Assembly (NCBI GenBank): GCA_025201805.1
Contig: MU619325.1
Span: forward strand, 73,174 to 137,173
Source of the DNA: Parasitella parasitica NRRL 2501
Taxonomy: Eukaryota; Fungi; Mucoromycota
Direction: 5' to 3'
Length of the DNA stretch: 64,000 nt
Of the stretch, positions 32,473 to 36,439 are shown piece by piece. The position numbers and the translations under genes were made by a program. The number at the start of each line of letters is the position of its first letter. Within the stretch, counting starts at the first letter, position 1. Below the pieces are notes generated by a model. That model saw nothing but the letters and a program-made list of their open reading frames with translations, did not search any database and was not told where the DNA came from.

Positions 32473-33103
32473 TAGAGGGAACAAGCAACTTTGCATATTA
32501 GTCACAACTATTACCGGCATTACCGACGATCCAGGGTCTCCAAACTGAAGCTTAGGATAATAATTGTACCTTATAAAGCATGGTTGGTGCATAAACAGAG
32601 ATATCTGCTCTTCAGATTTATGCTTTCTTATAAAAAAAAATAGTAATGGTAAACCGTTAGGTGACGCCAATGAGAACCCAATCAACTTTACATTCGTAGC
32701 TCCAGTTTGATTACGATTGATAGCCGTGGCTTGACTGAAGTACTTGGGGTTTGTGCAGACAACAGCACCTTTGCTTCTTACCCCTCATTGGCTGCGTCAC
32801 TGTTGATTGGAGCTATTCCCATGTATTATTAGCCTTTTCATCTTGCTTAAAGCCTTGACATATTAATACATGTCTCGCACTTTACACAAGAACCCAAAAT
32901 ATCATCTTTAGACACACATTCGACTTGTCCCGCTGAAATAAGTGATTATTATGATTTCTCTAATCCAAGAAAAGCCCTGAATTTTTTTTAATATACATAA
33001 TATGTTTGATACTATGTATATTTATAGTTGTGTTTATTTACAAAAGATGAGTTTCATGGCAGGGAGGAGGGAAACACACACACATTCAAATTGACATGTA
33101 CAA

Positions 33104-33542
33104 TTAAACATGTCCTCCTGATCCTCTTGTGAGTGTGTAATTGGGAGTGGGTTGATTCAATAGCGCCGATTCCTTTTGTTCCTTGATCTTTGTTGGTTCA
33201 TGAAACGCTGTCTTTTGGCGGATGGCTACAAAATCACAGGGATATTGTTTGTTTATATGCAATTTAACCGTTTTAAACTTAAAACAAACTGTACTTACCC
33301 TCTCGAATACCTTCTTCTCCAGCAGCCAGAATTCCAATGGGCAACTTGCCATTGCTCAAAGCCTTTAATTGCTGCACAAGCTCAGGGTGTGCTGTCAGCA
33401 CGGCGTAGGATCTTGACATCTTACCAATAGCTAGCACCTTTTTTTTTATGACTAGTCTACGGCGAGCGTCCAGTGTGCTATCATTAGTGTTCGCACCGAT
33501 AGCAGTGTGTTTGTTGCTGTTGTTGATAATGGCAAGGGACAT
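33104..33542 (-). CDS. 121-aa protein consisting only of the calcineurin A C-terminal regulatory region (calmodulin-binding domain), no phosphatase domain
   Basis: Exon 1 33542-33299, intron 33298-33226 (GTAAGT..TTGTAG), exon 2 33225-33104. Product MSLAIINNSNKHTAIGANTNDSTLDARRRLVIKKKVLAIGKMSRSYAVLTAHPELVQQLKALSNGKLPIGILAAGEEGIREAIRQKTAFHEPTKIKEQKESALLNQPTPNYTLTRGSGGHV*. Confidence 0.75.
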
Positions 33543-33607
33543 TTGAAATGTAGATGACAGAGATGAAAAATATATGTAGAAAAATGAAATGAAATGAAAA
33601 AACACTG

Positions 33608-33608
33608 C

Positions 33609-33616
<8 letters not shown>
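33608..33616 (-). promoter_or_regulatory. TATA box of the calcineurin-tail gene
   Basis: TATATAAAG on the minus strand about 66 bp upstream of ATG 33542, preceded by a poly-T tract. Confidence 0.55.
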
Positions 33617-33639
<23 letters not shown>

Positions 33640-34677
33640 TCGCCTCCCCTCATGTAGTGTGATTAGTGTGATTAAATAATAGAAAATCCCTCTGGATCTA
33701 ATCACTACATCAAACTGGAACTCTGAGAACATTCCTCCCCCTTTCTTTGCTAAACATTTGTTTGATATTTGCAATGGTAGATGGACAAACGAAGATCACT
33801 TTTTTTCTAGCGCTTCTATTGTTTATACTTACTTGATGCACCACATGCACAGCCTCTCCATATTTGTTCTTCAACAGAAAATCGTACAATTCCTTAGAAG
33901 CAAAGCTTTCACTGGTAAAGCATGTCGTAGACATCACGTCATGGTGGATTTACAACACTTGCCAGGGAGTTTCGATTATGCTTTTGCCTTCATGAGATTT
34001 GTTTTCAGCAAGAGAGAGAAAATACAACGGCAAAGCCCTTTTTGCGTGGACTTAATTTCACTAAAGCCTTCAGGGGCTCGTTTTGTTCGTATCGTCTTGG
34101 TCTCAGGCATGCTAATATGGATGTGTAGCGATCATGCAATAGCAATTAGATTAATCTCAATCTACGAGCACAGGCGCGTGCTGTTCCTAAGAAGCTGAAA
34201 CTTCAATGCCCGCATCTTGAGCACCTTGGTAAGGTACTCAAGCTTCGCTGTCCATACAGGCACATAGTTAATGCATTTACCCAATCAAAATTCTACCTTG
34301 AAACCCTAATAAAATTTACCAACCAAGGGCTTTACATCGAGATCGCAGTTGTTAATCATGGATACCTATTCGATGGTCTACGATTGATTTGTAGAGAATT
34401 TTACAAGAATTGGTCATTTTTTGTCGCATGTTTGGTAAAGATTTTAGATATTATGATGCCAACGCAACAGAAACAGAGACCAAAATGCTTTGAAAATCAG
34501 TGTTGACCTTTGCTATTCTTTTAGAATATGTGTCTTTATATATTCTCAACATCTATTATTGCACCTCAATGTACCTGAATTTGCTTTTTCCAGTTTTTTG
34601 TGCATCCCGTGGATGAACGCTGAAACCACCCAATGGCGGAGCACAGACATGCATAAAAAACGCCATCTTTTATTTAA

Positions 34678-36439
<1,762 letters not shown>

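Follow-up and report, generated by a model that had tools for sequence, protein, structure and literature searches.

The two-exon gene on the minus strand of Parasitella parasitica DNA at positions 33542..33104 of the window (the whole 64-kb stretch that was analyzed), referred to here as the mini-gene, encodes a 121-aa product and is, judging from the sequence, a free-standing DNA-level copy of the two terminal exons of a calcineurin A (CnA) paralogue; it is transcribed, spliced, under purifying selection and represented across the order Mucorales. The product is, with fair probability, a Ca2+/calmodulin-binding microprotein that would compete with CnA for calmodulin and so buffer or gate calcineurin activation, the binding being predicted by a complex model and the competition following from it by reasoning. 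It is, in turn, very unlikely that the mini-gene is either a dead fragment or a piece of a larger calcineurin gene.

Gene structure and expression

Inspection of the open reading frames places coding exon 1 at 33299..33542 (minus strand; 81 codons and the first base of an Ala codon) and coding exon 2 at 33104..33225 (minus strand; 40 codons including the split Ala, then TAA), with a 73-nt phase-1 GT-AG intron at 33226..33298 (minus strand) that lies within the Ala codon (G/GT..AG/CC), has G/GTAAGT as the donor and TTTGTAG as the acceptor, and reads CT..AC on the plus strand. Exon 1 opens with Met1 at the end of the CnB-binding helix (MSLAIIN) and continues through a variable linker and then the calmodulin-binding helix (codons 27-50, RRRLVIKKKVLAIGKMSRSYAVLT; 33393..33464, minus strand; assigned from the match to PDB peptides and from the complex model) into the conserved post-helix linker, as far as GIRE; exon 2 holds the AI start of the former autoinhibitory domain (AID) exon, a KIKEQKE block and a PNYTLT...GGHV tail up to the stop, ENERLPP being absent. 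The two-exon structure, the ATG, the 73-nt intron and the core peptide that had been quoted in the first-pass annotation are thus all present, and the product is identical to the 121-aa NCBI hypothetical protein BD408DRAFT_421466 of Parasitella parasitica (P0001), which equals the exon 1 plus exon 2 sequence and was used for the full-length analyses, dN/dS being calculated exon by exon. Neither P0001 (E<=1) nor the separate exons (E<=10) matched any Pfam family, and the SipA match seen on the paralogue of contig C51 (E=0.076) was discarded as sub-threshold noise.

Evidence at the RNA level is from a single small public run (X1; data stored as contigs), in which a 473-nt spliced contig of depth 255.5 (record 1; observed extent 33029..33554, minus strand) joins 33554-33299 to 33225-33029, exactly 73 nt being skipped with 0 mismatches. 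The junction across which reads had been sought is therefore crossed precisely as foreseen, and the mini-gene is transcribed and spliced as the first-pass annotation predicted. Adapter letters end the contig after 33029; it carries at least 12 nt of the 5' UTR and at least 75 nt of the 3' UTR, and its 5' end was probably cut short by a poly-T tract. The upstream region is represented in the same run by a contig with a depth of only 3.6, as opposed to 255 for the mini-gene.

Origin from the last two exons of calcineurin A

Three complete CnA genes (contigs C80, C16 and C151) and a second mini-gene copy (contig C51) were found in the Parasitella genome (32.8 Mb, 450 contigs), exon 1 of the window copy matching the three CnA genes at 48-57% identity over the calmodulin-binding region. 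Each of these CnA genes is interrupted by a phase-1 intron in the Ala codon that follows EGI[KR]x, the codon and phase used by the mini-gene as well, and their penultimate exon begins 8 nt (about 3 codons) before the Met of ..VT[ND]MLLAILNIC.. (the end of the CnB-binding helix), the residue to which the mini-gene start MSLAIIN corresponds (human CnA M364). Only this heptapeptide, i.e., approximately the 7 last residues, is left of the CnB-binding helix (human M364-N370, fungal MLLAILN). A profile of 15 orthologues aligns over positions 1-102 to human CnA-alpha 364-467 (E=3.1e-17) and also matches the calmodulin-binding CnA peptides of the PDB entries 2jzi, 4q5u and 2r28, which bears out the earlier impression of a well-kept calmodulin-binding helix and linker. 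Because the profile aligns to CnA, and because both the intron codon/phase and the start Met are shared, the mini-gene is best described from sequence as the product of a DNA-level duplication that took in the final two exons of a CnA paralogue. A partial duplication of this kind had been suggested before on the strength of an exon junction in animal CnA genes; the duplication holds up, with the start lying 8 nt inside the CnA penultimate exon, and the shared junction does so for this fungus's own three CnA genes, with which the comparison was made.

In a tree of a 59-column core, 32 mini-proteins form a single group as against 16 CnA sequences (support 100/98), and this group attaches beside the C16-type CnA paralogue (97/92), although the tree is unrooted and the alignment short. 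P0002, a 118-aa protein from another Parasitella parasitica assembly, branches off outside the C89/C51 pair, either due to the strains being quite divergent or due to the duplication being later than their split.

No CnA catalytic exons were found in the 64-kb window by tblastn with all the ORF pieces of the three CnA genes, the calmodulin-binding exon of the mini-gene being the only match, so that the earlier remark on there being no phosphatase exons upstream is upheld; no Metallophos catalytic domain was found either by Pfam searches of P0001 and of each exon.

Retained and lost calcineurin features

Among the 15 orthologues, R28, R29, I32, K35, V36, A38, I39, G40, S43, V48 and L49 are invariant within the helix, and M1 (with S2 and A4), P53, L55, K60, L67, P68, G70, L72, G75, E76 and A82 are invariant or nearly so elsewhere. 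The helix contains YAVL, the counterpart of FSVL in CnA, and the family has a signature of its own, with IK[RK]KV in place of the CnA IKNKI, S[RK]x[YF]xVL[KR]xxP in place of SRVFSVLRE[EN]S and GEQG in place of G[AS]EG.

The AID core (..FE[ED]A[KR]..[DL]ENERLPP) is, by contrast, absent from all 21 orthologous tails aligned, some lineages keeping the AI, AITSF or AIxxF start of the AID, and exon 2 encodes 38-57 aa in the mini-proteins versus 57-72 aa in CnA. The MAFFT alignment sets the mini-protein tail (..D.VEQKDRSLQH.ILATPNTKVAREGQV in Absidia and Cunninghamella) against the extreme C-terminus of the C16-type CnA (..GQEDHALSRMAEIIASVPNSKTDRKSKSQV / ..RDAIGQEDHALSRMAEIIASVPNSKTDRKSKSQV), and hhalign arrives at the same register, if weakly (P=0.012) and with few CnA sequences. 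Since the C-terminal end of the mini-protein aligns with that of CnA, the AID looks to have been deleted rather than to have drifted. HMMER against human CnA differs in register, placing KLKEQKD opposite SFEEAKG, whereas both MAFFT and hhalign match EQKD with the block behind the AID; in neither register is there an ENERLPP. Of what had been claimed about this region, the lack of NERxP therefore stands for all 21 tails, while "drifted" gives way to a likelier deletion.

The C-terminal string PNYTLT, in which a weak PxIxIT-like calcineurin docking site had been seen, is the Parasitella variant of the family motif PN[YT]K[VI] (the two Parasitella copies read YTLT and HTPT). It fits PxIxIT poorly, position 3 being Y/T/I/H/C and position 6 being A/T/G, with Benjaminiella having no P at all, and as a specific claim the PxIxIT identity was rejected on account of these variable key positions. 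The motif was instead probably inherited from CnA's own tail, to judge from the alignments. At their C-termini, the C16-type CnA (last exon, L004) has ..VPNSKTDRKSKSQV and the mini-proteins have ..TPN[YT]K[VI]..EG[HQ]V, and such a motif common to both hints at a function of the CnA C-terminal domain.

Predicted calmodulin binding, the proposed mechanism and its closest rivals

AlphaFold2, given the 15-sequence alignment, predicts confident helices at residues 19-51, 53-62 and 75-89, with a pLDDT above 90 over approximately residues 30-80 and disordered ends. When residues 18-92 were modeled together with calmodulin and 4 Ca2+, ipSAE values of 0.89/0.90/0.89 were obtained, the best of 3 controls reaching 0.00; contacts agreed between the runs to at least 92%, the pLDDT of the partner was at least 82, and the predicted interface on the mini-protein consists of residues 27-50 and 66-73. 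The ipSAE mark applied had been calibrated as one reached by 51/78 solved complexes and by 2/108 mismatched pairs. The calmodulin used was P0202 of Furculomyces, which is 87% identical to the C-lobe exon of Parasitella calmodulin, whose gene is split into 6 exons. The modeling that had been proposed as a check thus supports the predicted binding, although a pass of this sort indicates likeness and may be a recall of the calmodulin-CnA peptide complexes, since these have already been solved.

What is put forward here as the fairly probable reading is that, upon a rise in Ca2+, the mini-protein would bind Ca2+/calmodulin the way the CnA regulatory domain does and would therefore compete for calmodulin against all three CnA isoforms and perhaps against further targets as well, such competition being expected to buffer calcineurin activation or to raise its threshold. 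The competitive or buffering role, as well as any effect on dimorphism, is something we infer from the predicted binding. Mucor has approximately nine calmodulin-like genes (PMC3764228). The differences of the calmodulin-binding helix from that of CnA (N to K/R in IKNKI; RVFSVL to RSYTVL) count against a decoy. A pure decoy, furthermore, offers no explanation for the conserved MSLAI[IL]N, EQKD and PN[YT]K[VI]..EG[HQ]V, which, as conserved sequence blocks, point to at least one further partner; it is because a pure sink leaves the conserved N-terminus and C-terminal blocks unexplained that two other functional explanations stay alive.

The first of these, deemed unlikely, is a trans-acting inhibitor: at low Ca2+, the mini-protein would dock on the calcineurin holoenzyme and block substrate docking, until Ca2+/calmodulin stripped it off. 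The docking would proceed via Y[TAS]VL (the counterpart of the CnA FSVL that occludes the LxVP pocket) and/or via the C-terminal PN[YT]K[VI]. Elements occluding the LxVP site have been located in the CnA calmodulin-binding region, too (Perrino 1995, reviewed in PMC7456046), a region behind it folding on calmodulin (PMC7456046). V48 and L49 are, in keeping with such a role, invariant and preceded by an aromatic residue, Y or F, in most orthologues, and the conserved C-terminal motif suggests a second contact. Yet the AID core is gone from every orthologue, the tethered tail of the holoenzyme itself would outcompete a free copy, and PN[YT]K[VI] makes, as described above, a poor PxIxIT.

A comparably low probability is given to the mini-protein being a calmodulin adaptor or a competitor for partners of the CnA tail, in which a calmodulin module would be combined with an inherited CnA tail to make a localization regulator and not a simple sink, calmodulin being either delivered to the tail's partner or that partner being contested with CnA. 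Such an adaptor would make sense of the alignment of the exon-2 end with the end of the C16-type CnA (MAFFT, with hhalign in the same register), of E97, K99, P109 and N110 in exon 2 being invariant or nearly so, and of an exon-2 dN/dS of 0.1-0.5 across species. The tail alignment is, however, weak and includes few CnA sequences, and the tail is drifting in Parasitella, whose two copies give an exon-2 dN/dS of 0.90 and now have YTLT or HTPT as the motif.

Conservation, selection and the fate of the duplicated neighbor

Short, phosphatase-less orthologues of 109-140 aa, for which a search of Mucoromycota had been proposed, are annotated or recoverable in more than 25 genera of Mucorales, among them Mucor (lusitanicus MUCCIDRAFT_86710, plumbeus, fragilis, hiemalis and mucedo), Gilbertella, Choanephora, Pilaira, Pilobolus, Helicostylum, Benjaminiella, Cokeromyces, Mycotypha, Rhizopus, Sporodiniella, Radiomyces, Apophysomyces, Cunninghamella, Absidia, Chlamydoabsidia, Halteromyces, Hesseltinella, Gongronella, Lichtheimia, Dichotomocladium, Fennellomyces, Phascolomyces, Zychaea and Syncephalastrum. 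No family member from outside Mucorales was found among the database matches: the sole non-Mucorales candidate, P0289 from Umbelopsis, is a CnA fragment with an intact AID. Many short matches were set aside as CnA exon fragments from unspliced contigs, and P0023 (1858 aa, matching over 10 stretches) was discarded as a bacterial Ig-repeat protein and a repeat-driven false match. Orthologues P0123, P0124, P0275, P0281 and P0009 (80-125 aa) bear automatic names such as "3',5'-cyclic-nucleotide phosphodiesterase" or "PP2B catalytic subunit", which look like annotation artefacts. Absidia cylindrospora has two mini-gene copies (P0262 and P0269), so that the gene is independently duplicated in the Absidia lineage.

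Selection was gauged by Nei-Gojobori dN/dS estimates and Fisher tests on substitution counts. For exon 1, dN/dS is 0.12 between the two Parasitella copies (22 synonymous and 12 non-synonymous substitutions; Fisher p=2.5e-8) and 0.16 versus M. lusitanicus, far from the value of 1 that had been named as the mark of a recent dead fragment, and in more distant pairs the protein identity of exon 1 still amounts to approximately 40-70% even though synonymous sites are saturated. The mini-gene is thus under purifying selection. It could still be asked whether it might be a non-functional leftover, i.e., a decaying partial CnA duplicate transcribed by chance, given that it belongs to no Pfam family, is annotated as nothing but a hypothetical protein and, in the window, is a recent secondary duplicate sitting beside a BUD31 pseudogene. 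This is, nevertheless, hardly credible, and the leftover reading comes close to being refuted by the exon-1 substitution pattern just given, by a phase-1 intron at the same position and an intact ORF, start codon and stop in 9/9 loci checked, by a phylogeny that is order-wide, by the conserved synteny described below and by the deep contig of the spliced transcript.

The RFA1-MET17 synteny that the first-pass annotation had proposed to look for does not define the locus; the conserved neighbor is instead BUD31, lying just upstream on the same strand in 6/6 orthologous loci whose flanking sequence reaches far enough (M. lusitanicus, Radiomyces, Rhizopus, Absidia, Benjaminiella and Choanephora). 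In the window itself, RFA1 lies downstream of the mini-gene, and MET17 (Cys_Met_Meta_PP, E=6.6e-18) starts on the plus strand at 34732, 1.19 kb from it, which agrees with the divergent MET17 noted earlier at approximately 1.2 kb. On contig C51, BUD31 is intact (Pfam E=5.7e-18), whereas in the window only a decayed copy of this BUD31/G10 splicing-factor gene is found (~33745-34182, minus strand), which is 64.5% identical to the C51 copy, has lost 23 nt and ~255 nt to deletions and retains no Pfam match. The two regions share just ~1.2 kb, namely BUD31 plus the mini-gene, which rules out a large block or whole-genome duplication and identifies the window copy, at the sequence level, as a Parasitella-specific secondary duplicate of ~1.2 kb. 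The two mini-gene copies are 86-87% identical in the exons, 66% in the intron and 49-60% in the flanks. The decay of BUD31 serves as an internal control: the co-duplicated neighbor has decayed, and the mini-ORF has remained intact and expressed. A run of 54 N, perhaps an assembly gap, lies between BUD31 and the promoter of the paralogous mini-gene on C51 (L002, ~1950-2003).

Promoter and transcript boundaries

A TATATAA box is present at 33610..33616 (minus strand), 74 nt upstream of the ATG, just as the first reading of the sequence had it, and in the C51 paralogue, Mucor, Benjaminiella and Choanephora the box is likewise kept, at -69 to -83. Further upstream, at 33717..33734 (minus strand), lies a conserved element shared by 5 loci, GAATGTTCTCAGAGTTCC, which resembles a heat-shock element (GAAnnTTC), is preceded by AGGGG and forms the core of a ~75-nt block that is ~93% identical between both Parasitella copies (conserved block at ~33690-33745). 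This 18-nt pattern is confined to the mini-gene promoters of the 5 loci concerned and present once in each: in the window and, 190-250 nt before the ATG, in Choanephora, Benjaminiella, M. lusitanicus and the C51 paralogue. It was not found at the Rhizopus, Radiomyces and Absidia loci. By its resemblance, the element may be a stress-responsive promoter element. A run of ~30 T (~33617-33639, minus strand) separates the conserved upstream block from the TATA box and is absent from the C51 copy.

That the two exons might form the end of a longer transcript, through splicing to catalytic exons far away or through BUD31 read-through, is brought to mind by the Helicostylum model P0264 (232 aa), which fuses BUD31 with the mini-gene and looks like an annotation artefact, and by the 5' end of the X1 contig being cut at 33554 near the poly-T tract, but is extremely improbable considering that the 64 kb hold no catalytic exons, that BUD31 is closed by a stop codon of its own in C51 and the orthologous loci and is a broken pseudogene in the window, that a conserved TATA box and upstream element stand between BUD31 and the mini-gene, that the Met1-Ser-Leu-Ala start is kept in nearly all orthologues and that more than 25 independent gene models start at Met1.

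Significance and relation to known systems

In Mucor, both virulence and the switch between yeast and hypha are under the control of calcineurin, whose pathway is a drug target (PMC3764228); CnaA-C and CnbR are the only components listed for it (PMC3764228; PMC12957363, 2026). Literature searches for such a protein, for MUCCIDRAFT_86710 ("86710" plus Mucor) and for a calcineurin microprotein returned no paper, those on Parasitella and calcineurin being irrelevant, and a calcineurin tail that stands alone and is kept throughout an order of fungi therefore appears to be undescribed, its models residing in GenBank as hypothetical proteins. If this conserved and well-expressed gene does provide a free copy of the CnA calmodulin-binding tail, the mini-protein would be both an unrecognized component of the Mucor calcineurin pathway and a natural phosphatase-derived microprotein, one that is small and soluble-looking, with a clear predicted partner and a clean two-exon CnA origin. 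The retained C-terminal blocks may also help to explain the CnA C-terminal domain, the function of which has been described as not known (PMC7456046). A broader proposal, doubtful as it stands, would be that Mucorales possess an ancient trans-acting CnA regulatory tail that binds Ca2+/calmodulin plus the holoenzyme or a partner of the CnA tail, constituting a new class of endogenous calcineurin regulator, one that would determine the Ca2+ threshold for switching between yeast and hypha and that is possibly stress-controlled via the heat-shock-element-like sequence.

The closest known relative is the CnA regulatory domain itself (PPP3C/Cna1; CnaA, CnaB and CnaC of Mucor), with homology that starts in the last part of the CnB-binding helix and takes in the calmodulin-binding region as well as the linker (human 364 to ~467), the same intron position as in the fungus's own CnA genes and the same predicted mode of Ca2+/calmodulin binding. 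Unlike CnA, the mini-protein is encoded by a separate gene with its own promoter, lacks Metallophos, the full CnB-binding helix and the AID core, and forms its own clade with its own substitutions.

Other modulators of calcineurin output include RCAN/Rcn1, Cabin1, AKAP79 and the splice form CnA-beta1, in the last of which an altered CnA C-terminus rewires autoinhibition. RCAN-type proteins rely on PxIxIT/LxVP docking and a calcipressin domain with FLISPP, whereas the mini-protein is CnA-derived and would most plausibly act via calmodulin; no calcipressin domain was found in it by Pfam (P0001 at E<=1, exons at E<=10).

MicroProteins (miPs) are small single-domain paralogues that titrate the partners of multi-domain proteins, e.g., the Id proteins or plant LITTLE ZIPPER, and the known ones mostly target the dimerization of transcription factors. 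Like them, the mini-protein is short, stems from the partial duplication of a larger protein and keeps the interaction module only, the effector domain being gone. As a small paralogue of 109-140 aa made of the last two CnA exons with the calmodulin-binding module, it falls within the miP concept, the titration of calmodulin being a proposal that builds on the modeled complex; no miP of a phosphatase's calmodulin-binding tail was found in the literature.

In its proposed role, the mini-protein would, finally, resemble PEP-19/PCP4, neurogranin, neuromodulin and RCS/ARPP-21, the small and largely disordered animal proteins that sequester calmodulin and thereby tune calcineurin and other calmodulin targets. 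No IQ motif was detected in it, there being neither a Pfam match nor an IQxxxRGxxxR string in the orthologue alignment. It is, in contrast to these animal buffers, unrelated to them in sequence, restricted to fungi and predicted to engage Ca2+-loaded calmodulin through a basic amphipathic helix of the CnA type.
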